Shown here: positions 12,841-62,163 of the stretch, one piece after another | Layout of the letters: every line of letters starts with the position of its first letter | Numbering within the stretch: the first letter of the stretch is position 1 | Notes under the pieces: model-generated | Told to the model about the DNA's origin: nothing | Seen by the model: only the letters and a program-made list of their open reading frames with translations | The model's database searches: none | Translations under genes and position numbers: made by a program | NCBI GenBank assembly: GCA_016748015.1 | Contig: JAAOMT010000088.1 | Span: 217,663-281,662 of the forward strand | Source: Geosiphon pyriformis uo1 | Taxonomy: Eukaryota; Fungi; Glomeromycota | DNA: 64,000 nucleotides | Direction of reading: 5' to 3'

Positions 12841-13456
12841 AATCGGGATTTAAAAAACTTAATTCCTACCTTTTTAACCCATTCAATAAAAAACGGTTAA
12901 GCGGGATAGATTATGCAATGAAATCCAAAAGTTTTTCGGTTATAAAAAAAATTTGAATAGGCAAAATCTAAGACTTAGAAATGTGTTCTTATGAACTATC
13001 AAGCTAAACTCTTTTGAGTGTAAATTATCTGACCACAACCGATGTTGTTTAATAACGCAAATGAGTAATGATTTCTCATTGGGAGGAATTATTGTATCTT
13101 AGTTAAAGTTGCTAATAATGAAAAAATACATTGGTTTGAAGGAGTTAGAAGAATATTATACGATGTTAGCAATGTATATTTTTACATTATTAATAGTGAT
13201 AAAGAGTTAGATCGCAAAAAAACGACTTAAAATATAGCTGGCAATGCACAATCACCGATATTCCAGTTGAGCTTGAACGCGTTTGGGTATAAGACTTTGC
13301 TTGTTCTTTTACTATTCCACTCTAATATTAAATATTAAAATATAATTACAATGTTTAACTTTGGCATGAGTTTATAAAGGTATGAGATATGTATATTTAT
13401 AATTTGATGATGTAATAACAAGTAGTCTCGAAAACCCGAGGCAGAAAATATATTCC

Positions 13457-15014
13457 TCATAGGTCAAGGCTAGAAGGCAATTTCAGCTCACGAACGCCTG
13501 CCAAAACATTATCAACACTCATGTTTCCCATCATGGTTCGTGTTTCTATGGTGGAAGTCCCTATATGGGGAAGCACAAGCACATTTTGAAACTTCAATAA
13601 GGGATGATCAGAATCCAAAGGTTCAGGTGTTGTCACATCTAGACCGACCGACCCAATAAGACCTTCGGACAGTGCACGTACAAGGTCATCTTGTTGAACG
13701 ATACCACCACGAGCAGTATTTACAAATATCTCCAAGAACAGAATATTAATTAACCCTTTTTTTTTGTAAAAAGTGAATAATTTGGGACGTGGAAAAATTA
13801 CTTACTACGCTTTTTTTCATCTTTTTGAAAGCCTCGTAATTAAACATTTCCCTGGTTTTTTCATTGAGGGTGCAACTCACAGAAATGACGTCAGATTCGC
13901 GCAATAATGTTTCAAAATCAACTCGAAGGGCACCTAATTCTTTGGCTACGGGTTTATCACTGTTTCCAGTATAAATTATTTTACCATTTAAGCCTATAAA
14001 GGGTTGTAATCGTTGTGTAATCGCTATCCCTATCCTACCGAGCCCAACAATCCCAATGGTTTTATCGGTTAGTTGTGTTCCTAAAACATTTTATTTTAAA
14101 AACAATTAGCTAGAAATTCATCGGGTACACTAATTGGAAATGTGAAATGGGAACACTGACCTAAGGATGATGCAAAACTCCAATTATTCCATTCTCTGTT
14201 TAAAACCGCATGAATATTCTATAAAAGATGAATGAATTTAATAAAAAATTAATCGATAAGCGTCATGATTAAAGTTTCAGTTTACCTCACGTATTCGACG
14301 TGCCGCCCCCAAAATCAATATAATAGCAATATCTTATAATCGAATTCAGTATAGAAAGGGATTGGCCAAAGCAAAATTTCTCACTAGTCAAGTTTTCACT
14401 GACCTGCTGTTGCATCGGTCAAGACGCCCGGCGTAAATCCAAGCACTATTCCGCGCTTTCGAAGTTCATTGGTATCGATGTGATCATAGCCAACTGTGTT
14501 AAGATAAAAATATCATTCACTTTTAGGGAAAGAATCTAATTTTAACACATTATAAATTCAAATTCACACCTGAATGAGTCGACACGACTTTGAGCTGTGG
14601 ACCAGCTTGATCTAATAACTCGGCATCAATTTTATCCTTTGGCGCACACAATATCCCGTCAACACCTTATAAAAAAAATAAAGAATAAAATTTATAGCTT
14701 TTAGATTTCTTGAATTTATATTCTCTTATAATAACTTAATATTGCAAAAACTCACCTTTTATGATTTGTAATAACACAGTACGTGAAAAACTGCCGTTTT
14801 CTGGACGAAGTAATTCAATATCAGGAGCCGACTGTAGGCGTTCCATTGAACTCGGTAACAAATCTTTCGTTATTAAGATTTTATAACGCTTATTAGTTTC
14901 GGAGGTATTCGAAAAAGACATTGAACTTGATCTAAGAAAGATTTTATTATGTCGTAATGATGGGAAAATTAAGTTACAATATTTTGAATAAGTAGGTAAA
15001 ACCCAGCGGTGCAT
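13457..15014 (-). CDS. Glyoxylate/hydroxypyruvate reductase (D-2-hydroxyacid dehydrogenase family), copy A; 7 exons, 31-aa N-terminal extension
   Basis: Spliced product has [24 protein letters not shown], the Rossmann motif [24 protein letters not shown] and LPHIG. All introns are GT-AG. The second ATG at 14921 matches the copy-B start. Confidence 0.93.
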
Positions 15015-15509
15015 TGAATTTCGCAGAGTGAATGGAAATTATAAATGTTTAATTAAGCATTACAATATCCATCTTTGATTGATGATCCAACTAGATTAGT
15101 TTCGTTTTGACGGGATTTCCCGATGAAGTTTCATTAAATATGCGAGTTAAATAGGTTTAATGTGAAACATCATTTTGTAGATAGAAAAAGAAAAGTTTAG
15201 CACGCCAATCCCTTATATCCTCAGTCTTCACGAAGAAACTTAAAATTTTGAACCTCTTTAATCTTTTAGGATTGCTGCTCATAAAAATAAATGTGAAAAT
15301 TATCATCGTCACTCTTTGGTTAATTCCGGCATATAAGTACTCAACAGCCTTCTTTTAAATTTTATATATTTTTTCACTTGTATTGGGAAAAATTCCACCT
15401 GAGATGTTTCTTTGAAATGAGATTTCTTATAAATATATAGACAAATATATATTAGAACAAATTAAGATTTGGATTATAAGAAATTAATACATTTAAAATT
15501 TGGTTCAAG

Positions 15510-17300: not shown

Positions 17301-18601
17301 ATCTTTACTATAATTATTATCACTAAACCATATATATTGCTATATAAAAAACGTCATTATCTATGGTTTACGGAAATTTTACGCTTACGTCAAAAGTTAC
17401 ATGATAAGGATAACTACCTTAGTCATAAGAAATATCTGCCTTATAATAAAATATATACACTGTTATTTCTCATTTAAATTATTTACAAATGGCGTTAAAT
17501 TCGTAATTATATATTGCAAGTCAATATAATGGTTTCAATTAAACCAGTTTTTTTATTGCTCTATATTTGTCTTTTTGAATAAGATTTTGCTTTTTAATCT
17601 GAAATTATTTATTTCTAATGATTTGTTTCCATTTTGAGATTTGTATGCCTTAGCTTATTCGTGTAACATGTAAATTCTCACTTAACTATAAATAAGAAGT
17701 AAAAAAAACATTCATTACTTTTGAAACGTTGTTTCTTTGGGATAGATGTCAAATTTTGAAGTTGTACTGCCAACCAATAATAAAATAGAAGGTTTTGAAG
17801 GCCTAAAATAATTTTTTTTCCTTGCGAGCAGTCATACTTCAAATTTGCTTTACTAATTTTTATTTCTCAATTAGAAATAAGTCAATATAAAACTTACATT
17901 TTTTTGGATAATAGTCAACTTAGTAAAATGAGCTTAATTGGTTTTTGTGTGTCTTGAACAACCTCAACCTGGATATCGCAGAAGAATCAATGAGTTTTTC
18001 TCTCAACGAACCAGTATATTAATTCGTAATGATAAATAATTTTTACTTTCTCAAATGCGTAACAAATTAGCCTTTCTTGAGAATTGAACTTAAAGTTTAA
18101 GGTTCATTATGAACTTGAATTAAAGACTTAGTATTTAAATCCTAAGTAAAAGTATTATTATTTGAAAGTAGATGAAATATATTTCTTGAAAAGGAAACTA
18201 ATTATGCTTTCATTGCGAGATTATTGGTGCGTTTTAAAGATTGCTCCATTAATAAAAAGTTTGCACCCACTTTGATGAACGAGTAACAATTCGCTTAAAA
18301 GTTTTAGGTAAGCTCCCAATTTAGATCTTAAAAAACATGAATTCGTGTAACTTATCAAAAAAATTACATTGGACAACATTAAAGTTTAAAACTATATGCT
18401 ATAATTCTCCCGTCATACCAGCTACTTAATTGACATGTATTTGATAAGTTACCCCAATAATATTATAAATCTTCAAAGTTTAACTTATATTTCACAAGCT
18501 GCTTGTATCTCAAATACCCAAATGATAAAAAGAGTAACTTTTAGATTTCAATTAATCTTTAAGAATTTTAGGAGTTTCAAGTTTTGACAAGAACAAAAGA
18601 T

Positions 18602-19858
18602 ATGGGCAATACTATTTCTAAACGGAATCGATCGAAAAAGGCAAAATATGCTGAGAATAAAAGTGAGGAATTATTTGAACCACAGCCAATCTCGTCTAAT
18701 GATTCAACTGTTCGATACTCAGGTGGACGTCGATATTTTTATGAGCAAAACAGTCTTTCATTATTGGTAATTTTTTTTAATTGATCTTGTTGAAAATCTT
18801 ATAAGCTGCCCTAAACTTTGTGACTAAATCTAAGCTGATAAATACAGCCAAATGATGAAAGAGAGATTAAAAGAATTTACAATACGCATTATTGCCTGAA
18901 AGAAATATTTCAAACTAATTTTACAGCACCTGTAAAGCAACAACTGCATAATGGTTGTCAGGTTCTCGAATTTGGGTATTTATATTTTGTGATTTTGGGT
19001 TAATTTCTAGTTTGTGAAAATGAAACTCATTTATTCATTTTATAAAGATGTGGCCAAGGGATATGGTCATTAGACATGGCTCAGGAATTTCCACAATCAA
19101 AGTTTATTGGTGTTGATGCAGACAATATTTTCAAAAAAAATGAATTTGAAAATATTAAATTTGTACAAGCTAATATATTTGATGGGCTTCCATTTGAAGA
19201 CGACACATTCGATTTTGTCTCAATGAGAAGATTGCTTTCATGTTTTACGATGAAGCAATTAGAAACAATTATACTAAGAGAGATTGCACGAGTTATCAAG
19301 CCAGGTGGATGGCTTGATTGGACTGAATATGGATTCAATATGCAAAATTCTGGAGAAGTAACAGAAAAAGTGATCAAAGGCAGTGAGTATTATTCTTTGC
19401 CATAAATAATATTGTTAATCTCAAGAAAGAGTTTCAGCCACTAAATTGCATTTTGAAAATAGTGTGCAATATGATGTGTGCCCATGCGATAAATCCACAT
19501 TTACCATTGATGCTTCCGAAAGTACTTACTTATCAAGCATTGTGGAAAAATATCATAGACCATCAAAGGCTTGTTGTTTTAGGCTCTCAAGGAGGAGAAA
19601 TGGGTAGAAAGGTATAAAATATTAATTTATGCTTTCCCAGTATTGTAGCTTATCAAAATACTCACAATGAAAATTTTCAATTCTTCACAGATTCTCGAGA
19701 ATAGCGTTGAAGGATTATATAGTTACAAAAAAGTTTATCTAGAATTCACAAGCCAAGATTCTGAAGAGTTTGACAAAGACCTTGAAACATTTTTCGAAGA
19801 AGTCGAGAGATTTGGAACTATGAACGAGTGGCACCGATGTTGCGCACAGAAAATATAG
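18602..19858 (+). CDS. Class I SAM-dependent methyltransferase (fungal LaeA-like/Methyltransf_25-type), 5 exons, 314 aa
   Basis: Exons 18602-18766, 18848-18975, 19048-19382, 19463-19611 and 19691-19858 join in frame (945 nt). Motifs: LPNDEREIKR, VLEFGCGQGIWSLDMA (motif I), FIGVD, GLPFEDDTFDFV, EIARVIKPGGW. Starts MGNTISK. Confidence 0.92.
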
Positions 19859-22699
19859 AAAAACTTGTGTCATGATAATACATGTAGTTTGTCTTGCATT
19901 AAATATAATTGTTTATTAATAGATCTACAAATTTTAAAAATGAACCCTACCCTATATATTGATTCTAAAGAAATGGACTCTTGGATTCTTTATAGCAAAA
20001 CCCCATTTATTGTTCAAACTGGGGCGGCTGAGTTCAATAGTTTTAACGAAGATGAAAGGATTTTTTTATGTAACGTGTATTTGAGTCATTCAATAAAAAG
20101 ATTTCAAGTGGGTAATAGCCGATCACCTAAAAACCAATCCTTTTCGAGAGCTATGCATTTTCCGCATTGTAACCCAAATAAGCAAACAAGAAAGTCTAGG
20201 GATACGATTACAACTAAATATCTTTCATCTTTCCCTCCATTTTGATAGATATACACAAAAACCTCGGGTAATTTAAGGTATATCTTCAATGGATAAACGT
20301 GCTCAGATTTCTCCTTTGAGGAATTTAAAATAATAAGATACTAAGTAAGAAGAATGATTTTTATCAAGGGTTGGTTTTATCTAACTGTTGCATAAATAAT
20401 CAGCTCAAGATTTGTTGACAAAATTTGTATTTCTTTTCACATTGTAATACAATTTTTTGATTGATTAAAAGGGTCTTGACATAAAAAAGTAGAAATAAAC
20501 AGTTTCAAAGGCAATAGCTAAAAAATTTGAAATCAGGTTTTTTTGTCTCATATTATCTTTTGGTTTAGCTTTTTTTAGTTATTTGTTGCAATAAATTTGA
20601 ATTTAATCAATTTAATGTTTTAAATTTTAAAAATTAAAATTAAAAAACAAGATATAAATAATATTTTCTTAACAAAATTTATTTTGTTGTAAAAGTTTAT
20701 ATTGATGGGGATTATTTTATATATTTTTTGTATTAAAATTTATTTATATCTACTTTTTTAGTGATGGTTTGTTAAATGTATTCATGTATTATTATTTTGC
20801 TTGATGTTCTTAATTTATTATTGTTAAAAGATATACAAAAGTAAAGAAATTGTTATTTTAAGAGTTGACAAATAAAAAATAAATAAAATAAAATAGATAT
20901 TTATTTTATATTGGAGATTTCCATTTTCTTTTATCACAAACCAAGGTTTTTGAACATTAGATTGTGATTAATTTCTTATTAATTTGTGTCAATTATTTTT
21001 TTCGCTTTAAAGATGTTTCAGAATATGGTTTTAATTATTATTAAAACCTAATTTTACAGTCATTGAACAAATAAAAAGTTTGTAAACTTTACTTTAATGA
21101 GTTTTTAGGGTGAAATTTGTATTTCTAAAAATGCAATTTCAAAAGTTGTTTTTTATTGTTTTTCAAAAGTAAGATTCTATTTTTATTCTGCATATTGATA
21201 GCTAAAAACAACGGAAGAAGGATAAAAATATTTTTTTCGAAATATCTTTTTGAATTGGGATCACCTATAGCACTATCAACAAAGGGTTTGCCAATAATTT
21301 TCATTTAGATTTCTCAATCTTAAAATTATAATTTTAAGAAAGAGAAAGGATATTTGAAGGAGACCTAATTATAATATTTCCACAATTAAAGTGGGAAAGG
21401 CAATTCGTAGCAACTTCCCATCGTTTCATTCAAGTATAGTCCATTATGTGCAGCAAACAACCTCATTTCCCTCACGTCAATACACATCTAAATGCCAATG
21501 TGTAACAAAGTTCTTTTCAGAAATACCAACTTCACTGGTTTCAAGTGGACAGTTGCACACAACTTAAATCCAATATTGAGGCACAGTATGCAAGCACGGA
21601 CCAAAAACGGGCATACCCGGACAAGATCTGTGGAATGTGTGGATCGAGAAATTTCAATGTACTTATTGGCAATAAATTTTTCATCTTTCAGAATAAGTTA
21701 CCTTGGTCCTGTGCCATTATGAGCGTCAACCTCAATATATATAAAAAATAGTTCCATTTGGTCAAACACGTATCGGTGATAAAGAATTCGCACGTTATAA
21801 CGGATAAATATTTTAGAGAACTCTGAAAGATTATCATAGTATAATTTGCTCCCATCTTCAATACCAACGAATCTTTGAATTTCCATTAAATCTCGAATTA
21901 AACAAGAAATTTATCTTAAGCGTCCAAAAATTTCTCGAGGAACTGGAAATTCATTCAGATAATCAAAGCTATCGAGCTTTGACGCTTATTATTAACTCGT
22001 TATATGCGACCTTAATTCCTACTATGTACACAATAGAAATTAAAATCGTTGTTATTATTGCTTGAGAAATATATTAAAGTTCGAGAGTTATACCAGAGAT
22101 GTCATGTGAAGCCTTGTTTTCTTCGGTGAAACAATTTGTTTGCATCGCATAGACTGCATATATTTAAATTGCTTCAAGAAACTTTTGTCCATTATGGGAA
22201 TTCCAAATGGTGCAGGTGAGTCATGGAATTTCTAATTTCAGATGGAAGCCGTTTTGTTTGGACGACTTTTCATGAATTAATTTTTTTAATCAAGAGAAAA
22301 GCCATCAAGACTATTATAGTTAGAGAACTTCTCTCCAATGCTAAATTCTATAATATTCTTTGTGCAATTGCCATGGTATTTCTTGTTTTGTATTTCTGGT
22401 GTATAAAACATATGCAACTTTTACATTGAAATAATGCAAGGCAATTAGATAGAAGAGTTCATATAATATCAAACTAAAGAGCTATATTCACCCGGGTTTT
22501 GTTTGCAAGAAGGTTTTCGTAAATAATAACTCATATTTTTTTCTTAAAATTAGCTGGTAACATTCACAAAAGTTTCTCTTGAGACTGAAGTTTCGTTACA
22601 TCCTATTAGAAGTAGAAAAATGAACTTCTACTTTTTTGATAAGCTTAACGTGTAAGATACATAAAAATCAAGATGACAAGCATTTTCCAGAAAATTTAA

Positions 22700-24781: not shown

Positions 24782-25139
24782 TCACACTGATGTGTTTTCT
24801 TTTCCATCGGATCGATCCTTTTTTTCACAATAAGCATAAGGGCATAGAAAACAGGTCTGGGACACAATTTTGCATTCTTCATCGGGGTTACATTTAGGTC
24901 GGCATCGAGGAATCATTGAAGTGCAAAAAACGCAGCCTTCTTCTTCTTCTTCTACAAATAGTAAAGAAATGATAAATCTGGCGAAAAGTTGCTTAAAACT
25001 AGAAATATCAGAGTCGAATAAATTTTGCTTGGCAAAAACTTATTTTACCTTGGTCATAATAAAGCAATGAATTACTTTTTAAGAGGAGAAAACTTTTGAA
25101 AATGTATAGAAAAAGGAGATAAAGTTTTGCAAAAAACAT
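24782..25139 (-). CDS. Small secreted 8-Cys protein, 86 aa, Opy2-like cysteine-rich domain (2 exons; not in ORF track)
   Basis: Exon 1 25139-25049, a 97-nt GTAAAA...TTTGTAG intron, then exon 2 24951-24782. Product: MFFAKLYLLFLYIFKSFLLLKSNSLLYYDQEEEEEGCVFCTSMIPRCRPKCNPDEECKIVSQTCFLCPYAYCEKKDRSDGKENTSV*. It has a hydrophobic N-terminus, an acidic spacer and C-x2-C-x6-C-x3-C-x5-C-x6-C-x2-C-x4-C. Confidence 0.85.
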
Positions 25140-31087: not shown

Positions 31088-31978
31088 TGATTGAAACCTT
31101 GATTTTTATTTTCCCACGATTTCTTCGAAAAAAGATGAGATTAAAATGCAAGATTGCAAATAAAATCCTAAATCTCATGCTTTATGTTTGTAAATAGAAA
31201 TTCCTAAAAAAAATTTTTTGCCCTCTAAATTTCTTTCCAGGACCACTCAAACATTTTTCTTTCTCCCTAAATCTCTACGAAAAGAGATAACAAAGACATT
31301 TTTTTTCCTCTTAACTTTCCCCCTTGGAAATCTTCTCGCCTCAAATGTTTTATTAAAATTCTTGAAAGTAATAACATTTAAGCAATAGTATTTATTTTGG
31401 GAAAAGTAAAATCATTGGTTCAAGTTTCGATCTTATCAAAGAGAAGGATCAAACTTAATACAATGGAATTCATAAATTCACCTGCATACTTCTAGGATAG
31501 CAAACAATGGCTTTACTATAAGCTCTTCGTGGGTGTTATTGTTACATATAATCGACAGAAATAATACAAAGACCTAGCCGCGGGGTGCGGAAAAAGTGCT
31601 GATGCATTTAATAAATTACAATCTAAATACACCAATCGAAGAAACAAGGCTTCTTCGTTAAAATTTTATTTCACAAAAAAGATGATGCCATATGATAAGG
31701 ATAATATTTTTGAAATTATAAAAAGGAGACCAAATTTTATGACTTCTCATGAATTCCTTTTTAACAGAACTAAAAATTTAGTGTCAAAAGAATTCAGAAA
31801 GAGAATAAAAAAAACCATATTTGAAATATTTACCTTTGATTCCTTCCTGATATTTATAAATTTATTGATAAATTTCTTAAATATCCCATAAAAATTTTTC
31901 ATTACTTGACTTTTTTTTCTTTTATATTCATTGAAAACTGACCTCTGTTATTATCCACTCTTGTTCCTATCAACTATA

Positions 31979-32520
31979 ATGGATGTACCAATTAAAAACT
32001 ATTGCCATCTATTGAGCTTCGAAGATTTAAATGTTGACCAACATCATCAACAACAACAACTGGATTCCACTTTCTCTTTTCATTTAAATAAAATAAACCC
32101 TTCTTCTTCTTCTTCTCCTTCTTCTTCTTCTTCTCCTTCTTCTTCTTCTTCTTCTTCTTCTTCTTCTTCTTCTTCTTCTTCTTCTTCTTCTACTTCTCAA
32201 TTAAATCAACAAAATATTTACGTTCGACCTGTTTTCCCTAAAAATCAAGTTAATTTTCACGTAAATTCTTTTAATAATCCTCAAGGATACAATCAGGATT
32301 TGTCTCCAATGCAATCCTCTTTCATGAATTATCATTTTGAAAATAATCCCTACAAATTTATTCCTCACAATTATCAGCTTCCTTCTCCTCAAAAATCAAT
32401 TAATCAATCCCATCAGACACTTGCTCATCAACCATCAATTAATCAAAACTCACAACCAAACTCTCAAACACCTTTTAATTCTCCAGAGATTAAGAGTTCT
32501 CAATCTACTACTACTACTAC

Positions 32521-32564
<44 letters not shown>

Positions 32565-33943
32565 TCACTCCATCTAATACGGCAACAAACACAATTTTCA
32601 ATCAAGAAATCATTGAACAACAACAACCTTCTACAATTACAAAACCACAATCAAAAACAAAAAAGAAAACAACAAAGCCAAAAATTAAACGTCCAAAACG
32701 AACACCACGTCCCCCAAATGCTTTCATACTTTATAGAACAAACATTCAACCAAAGATTGTTGCCAAATATGATACCTTAACAAATGCTGAAGTATCTAAA
32801 GTGGCCAGCAAATTGTGGTGGAAAGAAGAAGAAGAAATACGTTTTCATTGGGAAAAGCTTGCCGATAGAATCAAGTTGAAACATATGCAAGAAAATCCTG
32901 ATTACATTTATCAACCAAAAAAAACTCAAGCGAAAAAAAATAAGATATCTAAAATTTCGGTAAACAGAGCTGGCGCTTCTTCTCCAACACATCCCCCCAC
33001 TCCAATCAATAAAAGATTGGCAACCGTTACTTTCAAAGATGATGCCACCTTAACCGCCATTGCTGAAGAAGCTTTCGTCAATTTTCAAACAAATGGTGCT
33101 ACAGAAAGGTCAACTATTCAGGACTCGAAACATAAATCAATTAATTCTATGATGCAAGATCATAAAGATTTTGATAAAAATCAAAATAAACATTTATCTT
33201 ACCCAGTCCATCATTTCACAATTGATAAAACAAGTAATAAAAAGCTTCTTGCTAATTCAAAGAGATTTCAACCAAATTCCAAAAACATAGTATCCTATAT
33301 AGAAGAAGCATCTTCCCTGTCTGTACCTCTAACAACACAATCAACACACAAACTGTCATTTCCTCATCACAATCATTTGATGCAGATTGATTCTCCTTTA
33401 TCATCAAATTACAATCAAAATTCACCCCAATTACAAACTACATTTCACGCTGAAGAAAATACGAATTCTTCAATGATTTTGGAGCAGGCTCACAACGATC
33501 AAACTGGTCATTATGACGCGTCAAACAATACCTCAAGGTCACAGTCACAGGAAATTTCTTTCCTGAATCCAATTGTGATTGAAAACTTTCATCCACTTCA
33601 ATCATCAAACTATTATAACTTGGAACATCATAACCAAGAAACTCAAAAATCTTATCATGATAACCATTTTTATCCTAACCAAGAATATTTTACACCACCC
33701 TGTTCAAACAGCTTCGAGGAGCCTAATATTAGTGATACAAGTAGCTTAATTCCATGTAGTCCTAGCGAACAAGGTGGAAGTGTAACATCTTGGTATGTGA
33801 ACGAGTATAGTTCAACACCAGCAAGAACACCTTCTGATGTCGATATGGATGGATATATGAGGGAACAACCAACTCCGTATGCTTGTTTTGATCATACCAC
33901 CACACCTTACACTTCCTCAAGATGCAGTAGTGTTGGTCTTTAA
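31979..33943 (+). CDS. MATA-type (sequence-specific) HMG-box transcription factor, intronless, ~654 aa
   Basis: First ATG at 31979. HMG box at ~32705-32920: PRPPNAFILYR...TNAEVSKVASKLWWKEEEEIRFHWEKLADRIKLKHMQENPDYIYQPKK, preceded by a basic NLS-like stretch. Flanks are low-complexity (poly-S, poly-N, Q/S/P-rich). Confidence 0.93.
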
Positions 33944-35848: not shown

Positions 35849-37260
35849 TGTACAACCTTTAACAAATATTAAAATTTGATTGAATATTTTCTCTTTTATT
35901 CTAAATTAATTTACTCATAAAAATATCATTTCAAATTAAAAATAAATAATAGTGAATTTGATCATGATTTCATTAAAATAATTTCAAAAATAATAATAAC
36001 AACAATATTTTTTGAAAATTTTTATAAACACAAAAAAAAATTGATTTAAAATACAATATTAAGAATTTTTGTAATTAAAATATTTTAGTATTTAATAATA
36101 TTGTTTAAATAAAATATTTTTTAAACTTCACGATTACAAATACGAAATTTTAAAATTGAAATAACTTGAATGTTCAACATTATTTAAAATATTTTAAGAA
36201 TAAAACTTGTTTTTATAGTACATTGTTTATTGATTGGAAATTTAAAAATTTATGTATTATGCAAATATTATAATATAAATTTACTTTGATTTTTTTTTTT
36301 GAACCAAATTTCAAATCTATTAATTTCTTATAATCCAATTTATTATAATATATACTGATTTAAAAAGAGATCTCATTTCCAAAAAAATTCTCAGATTGAA
36401 ATTTTCCCAATTCAAATAAAAAAGAATATAAATTTAAAAGAAATCTGTTAAATACTTTTATGCTGATCTTACAAAATTATGGCCTTGTAGATTCCTGATA
36501 TATTTCACTCATGGGAGATATCCGTCAAGTTGGACTTTGGCTTGTATGTTCTACGAATCCATTTTTAGAAGTAGGCATTTTTCTCAAAATAGACATATGG
36601 CCAATTTTCGTTCCTTAGCATCTATGATTAACTTAGTCTCAATTTAGTGAAAATTTATGTGAAGCCAGAGAAATTGCCTTTCTAGCCTTCGAAGCAATTT
36701 GTAGATAAAATCGTAGAATGGATAGCATGAACAGTGGATTCAATTTTTAAATATTGCTCAGGTTAGAAAGTTCATATTTTAATGGAAGGAGCAGAAGCGG
36801 CTGTAAGGAGAAAGCTTTTTTGATTATTTTATCTTTACAATCTCATCAAGAGAGTTTTTAATACAACTGTTTCTTCATAAAGGTCTCAAGGATTAATGAG
36901 CAGCAATCCTAAAAGATTAAAGAGGTTCAAAATTTTAAGTTCCTTCGTGAATACTGAGGAATTAACCTAGAATCTTCTTTTTCTATATACAAACTTTTGG
37001 AAAACTAAAAAGTGAAACGTCATAACAGTAGCGGAAAATTATGATTCACACTTAATCGGGAAATCCCGTAAAAAAAAACTGATCTAGATGGATCATCAAA
37101 CAAAGAATTAAGATTGATGGATATCGTTATTGCTTTATGATTTTCCATCCGCTCTTCAAAATTCTGGGTTTTATCTACTTATTATTTCAAATTTTCAAAA
37201 TATTGTAATTGTATTTTCTCATCTTCACGATATAATAAAATCTTCCTTAGATCAAGTTCA

Positions 37261-38742
37261 ATGTCTTTTTCGAATACCTCCGAAACTAATAAGCGTTATA
37301 AAATCTTGCTAACGAGTACATTGTTACCGAGTTCAATGGAACGCCTACAGTCGGCCCCTGATATTGAATTACATCGTGCAGAGAACGGCAGTCTTTCACG
37401 TACTGAGTTATTACAAAACATAAAAGGTGAGTTTTTGCAATATTAAGTTATTATAAGAGAATATAAATTCAAAAAAACTAAAAGCTATAAATTTTTATTC
37501 TTTTTTACTACAAGGTGTTGACGGGATATTGTGCACGCTAAATGATAGAATTGATACCGAGGTATTAGATCAAGCTGGTCCACAACTCAAAGTCGTATCG
37601 ACTCTATCAGGTGTGAATTTGAATTTATAATGTGTTAAAATTGCGAACAGAGATTATTCTTTAGATTCTTTCCCTAAAAATGAATGATATTTTTATCTTA
37701 ACACAGTTGGCTATGATCACATCGATACCAGTGAACTTCGAAAGCGCGGAATAGCGCTTGGAATTACGCCGGGTGTCTTGACCGATGCAACAGCAGGTCA
37801 GTGAAAACTTGACTAGTCAGAAATTTTGGTTTTGGCTAATCCCTTTCTATACTGAATTCGATTATAAGATACTGCTATTATATTGATTTTGGGGGCGGCA
37901 CGTCGAATACGTGAGGTAAACCGAAACTTTTATCATGGCTTATCGATTAATTTTTTATTAAATTCATTCATCTTTTATAGAATATTCATGCGGTTTTAAA
38001 CAGAGAATGGAATAATTGGAGTTTTGCATCATCCTTAGGTCAGTGTTCCCATTTCACATTTCCAATTAGTGTACCCGATGAATTTCTAGCTAATTGTTTT
38101 TAAAATAAAATGTTTTAGGAACACAACTAACCGATAAAACCATTGGGATTGTTGGGCTTGGTAGGATAGGGACAGCGATTACACGTCGATTACAACCCTT
38201 TATAGGTTTAAATGGTAAAGTAATTTATACTGGAAACAGTGATAAACCCGTAGCCAAAGAATTAGGTGCCCTTCGAGTTGATTTTGAAACATTATTGCGC
38301 GAATCTGACGTCATTTCTGTGAGTTGCACACTCAATGAAAAAACCAGGGAAATGTTTAATTACGAGGCTTTCAAAAAGATGAAAAAAAGCGTAGTAAGTA
38401 ATTTTTCCACGTCCCAAATTATTCACTTTTTACAAAAAAAAAGGTTTAATTACTATTCTGTTCTTGGAGATATTTGTAAATACTGCTCGTGGTGGTATCG
38501 TTCAACAAGATGACCTTGTACGTGCACTGTCCGAAGGTCTTATTGGGTCGGTCGGTCTAGATGTGACAACACCTGAACCTTTGGATTCTGATCATCCCTT
38601 ATTGAAGTTTCAAAATGTGCTTGTGCTTCCCCATATAGGAAGTGCCACCATAGAAACACGAACCATGATGGGAAACATGAGTGTTGATAATGTTTTGGCA
38701 GGCGTTCGTGAGCTGAAATTACCTTCTGGCCTTGACTTATGA
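37261..38742 (+). CDS. Glyoxylate/hydroxypyruvate reductase, copy B; 7 exons
   Basis: Exons 37261-37426, 37515-37610, 37707-37796, 37869-37915, 37981-38038, 38119-38393 and 38470-38742 join in frame. Motifs: [42 protein letters not shown]. Confidence 0.94.
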
Positions 38743-38929
38743 GGAATATATTTTCTGTCTCGGGTTTTCGAGACTACTTCTTGTTATTACATTATCAATT
38801 TATAAATATACATATCTCATACCTTTATAAACTCATGCTAAAGTTAAAACATTGAAATTACATTTTAATGTTTAATATTAGAGTGTAATAGTAAAAGAAC
38901 AAGCAAAGTCTTATACCCAAACGTGGAGA

Positions 38930-59950: not shown

Positions 59951-62163
59951 GTAAGATTCATGAGTTACGGGTCCATAAAAAGATTTTGCAAATTTTAGGG
60001 CAGAACGAGTGCTATCTGTAAAGTCAATTTGCAAATGAGAAGATTCTAGAATTCTTTATTATCCTATTCTGATGAATACCACTTGAGGAAGTGTGGAACG
60101 GGAAGTGATAGCTGTTCCCATTTTCATAAAACGCATGGTAGCTACGGTTTCAAAATTAAATTAAAAACAAAACCATTTTTTGAGAGTTAAATTCAAATCC
60201 CTCATATTTATTATGACAATTTTTATTTTCATTGAAATTCCACTAATGATATATATATTTAGTACACATTTGAATAAAAGATCAAAAAAATAAATAAACT
60301 TGCTAAAAGTTTTTCTTTAATCTAAAATATAAATTAGCTGATATTGAATTTCAATTGCCAAAGCCAATGACCCACCAAGGATTCCACCACCAAGGGACAC
60401 AATAAGCTTGAGCACAACTCCAGCAAGTTTTCGGTTTGACCACACATTTCTTATTTATCTTCTGACAATGCAAATTTTGCCACCAACTACAGTATGGTGA
60501 TACCCAAGGGCACCAAGCACATTGCGGCCAATAGCTGCCGCTCGCTTGTATATTTTTATTTGAATTTCCATTCACGCTTCCATCTGCTTGACCATTTGCT
60601 TGACCATTATTTTCTGGTAATGGAGTCTCATCCAATGGTACCGGATCATTGGCAGTGTTTGGAGGGTCTTGGGCCGTGACCATGGTCACGGTGTTGACAG
60701 CGATTAAAGCCAAAAGGAAAATAGCCACAAAAAATAGATTCAAAGTTTTTTTGTTCATTTTTGGAAGATTCTTTGAAGCTAACAGTTTAAATTATTTTTA
60801 CTTTGGTTCTGTTTTCAAGAATGATTTGAAATTTGATGGATTGAGGGGGTCTTATATAGCGAATTTAGAAATATAAAAGATAAAATTTTTACGTTGTGAC
60901 CATTAAAATCAACTAACTAAAAGATAGGCTACATCTGGCGTAAATTTCATTGTCGTTAAATTTTGTAAACTATGAAAATTAACAAATTTAGAATAGGTTA
61001 TCGGGTTTTTAAGTATACCTCACCTTCCTAGTAGGAGTAAAAAGATAAATTTAGTTTAAAATTTCTGGTAAAATTTTTAGAATTTTCGCAATGAGAGTTT
61101 AATGGTTTCTAAAATTAAAATTGATCCGCATTCCCATTTTCACAAAAGGAGATTTTGATTGAAAGCCTCGATCATTGTTGTGGCAAACCTACATGAACAA
61201 TTTTAGATTTTGAAGAATTAGTCTATCATAATTTCCTTTCTTAATATTTGCATCATTAATTTGGCTCTTCTTTTAAGGTTTAGCCTAAATTTGGTTAGTA
61301 TAGTTGCTTGACTGTTGGCACATATATAGAAATTATCATTATAAGGCTAAAGACCAAATTTATAAATATAACTTTAGGTAAATCGAGGATTATATTATAT
61401 TAAAGTTAAAATATTTCCTTAAAATAGACCTTTGCAAATTCATAGTTGCCTCTCTGAATGAAATTTGGTTATTTTTTTCATAGAAATGCATGCAAGATTT
61501 ATTTGGTATATTTGCTCAAGGAAAAATGCCGCATGTAAATTATGCCAGAGAATAAGATATTTGATATTATAAGATGCAAATCGATTTGTTGGTTACCTGG
61601 ATAAAACTTTCAATATGATTAACCTTTCGTCAAAGAAAGTGCCTTTCAAAGTCTAAAAAACACTAGAAATTATGGTGAATAAAATAGACTTTTAAATAAA
61701 AATCATAAGCGATCATATAAATACCACAAAATACGATCACATATGTTGTTTTTCCCTAGGAAATTTAACTTGCCCGCAAAAGACGGTTTCTTTTAAAAAT
61801 TTAGCCCTAACTACTTCAGATACAGTCCTGGCGGATAGTAATGGAGAACAATTCTTTTGGATTACACAATTTTTTAAAATACAAACCCAGAAAAACTTGT
61901 CATTCAAGATATCTTAATCCCAATGCTATGATATATATAAAAACTAATATTTAGTATGGCCCCCTTCTGGATTTATACAAGCTTGAATATCGGCAAGAAT
62001 GTTATAAATATTAGTAAGGACCACTTCTCTGGAGGATTTGCCCATTCTTTTTTACTCCCAATAAAAACCTCTAAATTCCGTTTTTTTTTCAACCATTTCT
62101 TTTACTTTTTTATCCATGATGGCCATAGCAGAACACGACATAGAGGTCTTGCTTGGAGGTGGG
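59471..62163 (+). repeat. Direct segmental duplication, copy 2 (complete)
   Basis: Matches 9362-11810. 59955-61093 (1139 bp) corresponds to the 777-N gap of copy 1. Confidence 0.93.
60351..60758 (-). CDS. Small secreted Trp/Cys-rich protein, 135 aa, Opy2-like 8-Cys domain
   Basis: Signal peptide MNKKTLNLFFVAIFLLALIAVNTVTMVTA, an acidic N/D/P/G-rich spacer, then CAWCPWVSPYCSWWQNLHCQKINKKCVVKPKTCWSCAQAYC and a PWWWNPWW tail. 8 Cys and 11 Trp. TATATAAG lies ~95 bp upstream. Confidence 0.9.
   Translation of the reverse strand: MNKKTLNLFFVAIFLLALIAVNTVTMVTAQDPPNTANDPVPLDETPLPENNGQANGQADGSVNGNSNKNIQASGSYWPQCAWCPWVSPYCSWWQNLHCQKINKKCVVKPKTCWSCAQAYCVPWWWNPWWVIGFGN

Follow-up and report, generated by a model that had tools for sequence, protein, structure and literature searches.

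A small, probably secreted Opy2-domain peptide of Geosiphon pyriformis and its anchor-less relatives across fungi

The 64,000-nucleotide stretch of DNA analysed here, hereafter the window, is part of contig C643 in the 128-Mb eukaryotic assembly of Geosiphon pyriformis, a glomeromycete of the Archaeosporales that hosts cyanobacteria. At positions 24782-25139 it very probably carries a real two-exon gene for a small secreted Opy2-domain peptide. The predicted 86-residue product belongs to the Opy2 cysteine-rich domain family, as judged from profile score, cysteine spacing and modelled fold. The product itself is no Opy2 membrane anchor, and the fungus has its Opy2 ortholog in a separate gene on contig C669. 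The Opy2 domain has been studied only within a membrane sensor, and the comparisons below indicate that it also forms a widespread soluble class across fungi.

The two exons (Table 1) are open in the frames that the spliced model uses and add up to 261 nt (91 + 170), or 86 codons and a stop. Exon 1 translates from its Met into 30 hydrophobic codons that end in YYDQ plus one base. The predicted intron begins with GTAAAA and closes with a pyrimidine tract followed by TAG. GC content is 40.6% in exon 2, versus 23-28% in exon 1, the intron and the flanks. The two exons, canonical 97-nt intron and 86-residue protein proposed by the first-pass annotation agree with the lengths and frames, and with a phase-1 layout like that of the paralogs. 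The locus DNA is single-copy in the assembly. Splicing from another in-frame donor, at 25075, or to one of the tandem AAG acceptors would shorten the protein slightly.

Table 1. Features of the gene and of two related genes in the Geosiphon genome (window positions unless a contig is named)
Feature	Position	Strand	Description
Exon 1	25049..25139	(-)	91 nt; ATG in AAA-ATG context; ends in phase 1
Intron (predicted)	24952..25048	(-)	97 nt, GT-AG, phase 1
Exon 2	24782..24951	(-)	170 nt; acidic Glu run, 8-Cys domain, 14-residue polar tail, TGA stop
Opy2 cysteine-rich domain (PF09463)	24827..24934	(-)	36 aa; Cys 37, 40, 47, 51, 57, 64, 67, 72
Second family member	60351..60758	(-)	Intronless, signal peptide, Trp-rich diverged 8-Cys domain; profile E 0.0016
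Membrane Opy2 ortholog (L001)	C669:1234756-1237857		Phase-1 intron after signal exon

Secretion is suggested by a signal-peptide-like hydrophobic stretch at about residues 1-24, as assessed by hydropathy alone (2.5 over 9 residues). This putative signal peptide is rich in Phe, Leu, Tyr and Ile, a composition that AT-rich DNA yields by chance, and a Lys breaks its core. Among 165 pyrimidine-tract acceptors in GC-matched DNA of the window, three, the real one included, had 60-150 nt upstream a hydrophobic first exon with A(-3)-ATG that ended in phase 1. We are highly confident that the locus encodes a real secreted peptide of the Opy2 fold.

Several other genes were recognised in the window. The nearest on the 3' side is a spliced SAM-dependent methyltransferase gene at about 18500-19900 (+), with Methyltransf_11/25/31 matches. 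Two near-identical inverted copies at about 13400-15100 (-) and 37100-38800 (+) appear 2-hydroxyacid dehydrogenase-like from their translation only, and an intronless gene at 31931-33943 (+) encodes a 670-aa HMG-box protein (PF00505, E 6e-15) of a large family expanded in Glomeromycota.

The first-pass annotation had called the gene hidden. It is indeed missing from the list of open reading frames, but GenBank already holds it as G9A89_010695 / KAG9305187.1, a hypothetical protein of 84 aa that was the sole match in a word search with exon 2 (100% identical, Geosiphon pyriformis); searches with the spliced model were made separately for each exon. Residues 30-84 of KAG9305187.1 are identical to the exon 2 product, and the donor is the same. 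The 5' end differs from that of the 86-residue model: the public model starts at 25057 and removes an intron of only 21 nt, so that intron sequence is translated and the N-terminal signal exon is lost. This public 5' end is probably wrong, and would keep the gene off secretome lists.

We prefer the 86-residue model because paralogs have a signal exon and a phase-1 intron just 5' of the domain, because a first exon of this kind is rare by chance, and because a spliceosomal intron of 21 nt is implausibly short for this fungal group. The 21-nt intron was rejected as far under the 95-218 nt found in the Opy2-domain family. The phase-1 introns of two paralogs checked against NCBI proteins measure 118 and 120 nt; in most other soluble paralogs the intron predicted at the same place is 95-124 nt long, as against 218 nt in the gene for membrane Opy2. 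One pair of soluble paralogs is intronless. The locus might instead be a silent or decaying copy, or be expressed from an NCBI-type or other 5' end that lacks a working signal peptide, as the differing NCBI model and the existence of an alternative donor and acceptors would allow. We consider this quite unlikely, given that the frame and all eight cysteines are intact, that the GC content of exon 2 gives no sign of erosion, and that the intron position is that of the paralogs, with 21 nt lying well outside the family's range.

The identity of the domain is clear. Exon 2 matches the Pfam Opy2 profile (PF09463) with 28.5 bits, versus a gathering cut-off of 22.1, over the full length of the profile (1-35/35), and its translation confirms the eight-cysteine spacing read earlier, C-x2-C-x6-C-x3-C-x5-C-x6-C-x2-C-x4-C, which is that of Opy2. 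An AlphaFold (AF2) model of the 36-residue domain has a pLDDT of 87 and little regular structure. Its best fold match in the atlas is a cluster of Ascomycota Opy2 N-terminal domains (TM 0.67, rmsd 1.5 A over 35 residues; remaining rows 0.48 or less), in a comparison of one predicted model with another for a short domain. Both the domain and the fold agree with the match to Opy2 that the first-pass annotation had named for the pattern. Sequence and fold searches of the PDB with the domain matched no solved structure, the results being blank or marginal. Two leads from the atlas feature search, an unnamed one at 0.75 and a nematode CC domain at 0.80, were rejected as sub-threshold.

The stop codon lies 14 codons past the last cysteine, leaving no TM helix and no cytoplasmic Ste50-binding tail, as had been noted at first reading. 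Splice-site and frame reading downstream of exon 2 revealed no credible TM exon after the stop codon. The candidates there were rejected: the donors beside the stop (GTGTGA/GTGATG) are weak, the acceptors lie >400 nt away, and the frames are AT-rich and pseudo-hydrophobic. At 86 aa, with eight cysteines, a putative signal peptide and no TM helix, the product falls into the broad class of small secreted cysteine-rich proteins and candidate effectors. No CFEM domain was found; Opy2 was the sole Pfam match at E up to 1.

The pattern of cysteine loss across the family bears on the state of these residues. All eight cysteines are present in 142 of 197 related domains, exactly Cys1 and Cys6 are missing in 40, and Cys3 and Cys5 in two. 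Joint loss of Cys1 and Cys6, one from each CxxC, is the behaviour of disulfide partners and supports disulfides in the family, with Cys1-Cys6 as one bond; the cysteine-rich domain of yeast Opy2 is likewise described as disulfide-bonded (bioRxiv 10.64898/2026.05.06.723240). Disulfide bonding of the peptide, proposed in the first-pass annotation, is probable in light of this co-variation. The two CxxC motifs, together with a marginal match to the Gal4 zinc cluster (E 0.87), could alternatively mark a secreted Zn/Cu thiolate peptide that binds metal instead of forming disulfides. The paired manner of cysteine loss, the bonded yeast domain and the oxidising secretory route make this highly improbable.

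Within the Geosiphon genome, a profile search gave 25 domain matches in 13 loci. One locus is the genuine membrane-anchored Opy2: its product has a signal, the domain, a TM helix and a long tail, and is 36-56% identical to membrane orthologs throughout Glomeromycota. In the other twelve, which have one to about six domains each, reading of the frames or of the annotated proteins revealed no TM helix. Four of the twelve are on the window's contig, one of them in the window itself (the second family member of Table 1), which is a paralog and separate from the gene described here. The gene is accordingly less unusual than its first description as a stand-alone protein implied: the Geosiphon genome has about 12 loci without an anchor, and the 79 matches of the full profile search include about 44 further relatives with a signal but no anchor.

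The soluble domains of Geosiphon have diverged. Their identity at non-Cys positions is 18% among themselves, compared with 33% among sampled membrane Opy2 domains, and the domain studied here is 15% identical to the membrane Opy2 of its own genome. In a mostly unresolved domain tree it stands apart from that membrane Opy2 and does not appear as a recent copy of it. A word search with exon 2 and the locus DNA returned no close ortholog for a selection test. Among the other loci, L002 and L003 (C597, 180.5 kb and 190.5 kb) are near-identical intronless duplicates, one with three domains and the other with the middle one missing, a repeat unit having been gained or lost recently. L007 (C549, 389.6 kb) and L021 (C702, 1445.7 kb) have almost identical signal exons on different contigs, one in front of a four-domain gene and the other in front of a single six-Cys-domain gene.

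Looking beyond Geosiphon, a hydropathy rule sorts 45 of the 79 profile matches into the group with a signal-like N-terminus but without a TM helix, a count that includes KAG9305187.1 and three other Geosiphon proteins. The named ones belong to Rozella allomycis, three Syncephalis species, Lobosporangium, Gryganskiella, Calcarisporiella, Mycena and Favolaschia; Mortierellaceae are among the groups represented. Single-domain forms exist outside Geosiphon too (P0063, P0076). In UniRef/NCBI, several relatives already go under the name 'Membrane anchor Opy2 N-terminal domain-containing protein'. In the literature searched we found no study of the soluble class and no tested soluble member; the one mention for Glomeromycota was a passing note on an Opy2-like membrane anchor gene of Rhizophagus (PMC10234402).

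The presence of the anchor-less architecture in fungi of very different lifestyles implies that it is old, widespread and independent of a mycorrhizal way of life. Compared at the sequence level, the gene is neither unique nor symbiosis-specific in architecture. This matters for the suggestion that the peptide is a symbiosis effector with Nostoc in the bladder or a partner plant as its target. The product is small, cysteine-rich and signal-bearing, and comes from an expanded, diverged family of a symbiotic fungus, all of which would suit an effector. The same architecture is found, however, in Rozella, Syncephalis, Lobosporangium, Gryganskiella, Calcarisporiella, Mycena and Favolaschia, and its sharing by mycoparasites and saprotrophs weakens symbiosis as a family-wide explanation. 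We regard an effector role as improbable.

Some related sequences have distinctive surroundings. Two metagenomic anchor-less Opy2-domain genes (L029:2125-3237 and L047:986-2483) lie directly 3' of an Erv1/Alr sulfhydryl oxidase gene, an adjacency that constitutes conserved synteny, on gene-dense, intron-poor eukaryotic contigs. A viral origin of these relatives was rejected, as their neighbours are eukaryotic housekeeping genes. P0041 has Opy2-like domains on a bacterial-looking phosphoesterase, and P0076 is a 68-aa single-domain protein amid closely packed genes (peptidase C14, thioredoxin) of possibly viral origin. From these two proteins, the Opy2 module may extend beyond fungi.

With middling confidence, we propose that the gene encodes a diversified secreted scaffold of the Opy2 fold that would bind an extracellular protein or glycoprotein, a type of target that we infer. 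The two-exon gene would yield the 86-residue precursor, from which the signal peptide would be cut near residue 24. In the ER the eight cysteines would form four disulfides, and an acidic-flanked miniprotein of ~60 residues would then be secreted. Its mode of action would resemble that of the Opy2 cysteine-rich domain: a rigid module stapled by disulfides, whose loops, on a re-tooled surface, would contact an extracellular protein or glycoprotein. This would probably not be the partner of the fungus's own membrane Opy2. Together with the other anchor-less Opy2-domain peptides it may form a diversified set that acts at the cell wall or where the fungus meets other organisms. Alternatively, the low loop identity among the soluble domains could reflect relaxed selection.

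The first-pass annotation had suggested a ligand or decoy for mucin sensors. A soluble domain of this kind might compete with membrane Opy2 for an Msb2/Hkr1-type mucin and so tune the HOG or filamentous-growth MAPK pathway in Geosiphon or in neighbouring fungi. Arguing for this, the cysteine-rich domain of yeast Opy2 binds the HMH (SEA) region of Hkr1/Msb2 (PMC13233613; bioRxiv 10.64898/2026.05.06.723240), a conserved membrane Opy2 is present in Geosiphon, and the peptide keeps the fold. Counter to this, the membrane Opy2 proteins of Glomeromycota have the motif L-x-[LVI]-R between Cys5 and Cys6 (Leu in 86%, Arg in 68%), which we infer to be their binding face, and the peptide has I-V-S-Q at this site, along with its low identity to its own membrane Opy2. 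A decoy should keep the binding surface, so the absence of the motif argues against a decoy of mucin sensors. Nor does the domain group with its own Opy2 in the weakly resolved tree.

In searches for other components of the pathway, both of them insensitive, no Msb2-like gene and no Ste50 SAM domain were found in the genome; the failure to find the former may also weaken the decoy idea. The Msb2-type tail motif is too degenerate, with 461 matches, and the single exact ENSLGW lies in a 51-codon frame without mucin or TM context; the Ste50 SAM search gave no match anywhere, controls included, and so is uninformative. Reports of SEA mucins cover two fungal phyla, and the examples given all come from Dikarya, a further point against a mucin partner here. 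We therefore consider the decoy reading unlikely.

On a broader and distinctly doubtful reading, the anchor-less Opy2 peptides would be ancient secreted ligands of SEA-domain mucin sensors, from Rozella to Mycena, tuning the MAPK signalling of their own or of rival or host fungi, and expanded in Geosiphon, possibly to manage formation of the Nostoc bladder. Should some member of the class bind mucin sensors, fungal HOG/MAPK signalling would have a natural modulator outside the cell; for the gene described here the sequence evidence leans against it. Our preferred reading remains the secreted scaffold with a re-tooled surface.

The closest known system is the cysteine-rich domain of Opy2 itself (PF09463), as found in yeast Opy2 and in Glomeromycota orthologs, including that of Geosiphon on C669. 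The eight-cysteine spacing and the predicted fold are common to these domains and to the peptide, and in the genes of the orthologs, as in the gene described here, a signal exon is followed by a phase-1 intron. Unlike membrane Opy2, the peptide has no TM helix and no cytoplasmic tail, and its loop residues are not conserved. Proteins of Lobosporangium (ORZ16035.1), Mycena pura (KAJ7195207.1), Rozella (EPZ32938.1) and Syncephalis (RKP23680.1) resemble it in combining a signal-like N-terminus and one or more Opy2 domains with the lack of a TM helix. Most anchor-less relatives have 2-7 tandem domains, in a search that favours repeats, whereas the peptide has a single domain behind an acidic leader. 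CFEM and other small secreted cysteine-rich proteins of fungi are likewise small and extracellular with eight cysteines, and a resemblance between Opy2 and CFEM has been noted (bioRxiv 10.64898/2026.05.06.723240). Compared with CFEM, the domain is shorter, has a different cysteine spacing and has no CFEM Pfam match. The gene probably adds one more to the small secreted cysteine-rich proteins whose domain is already known, in a soluble architecture that is unstudied but widespread.
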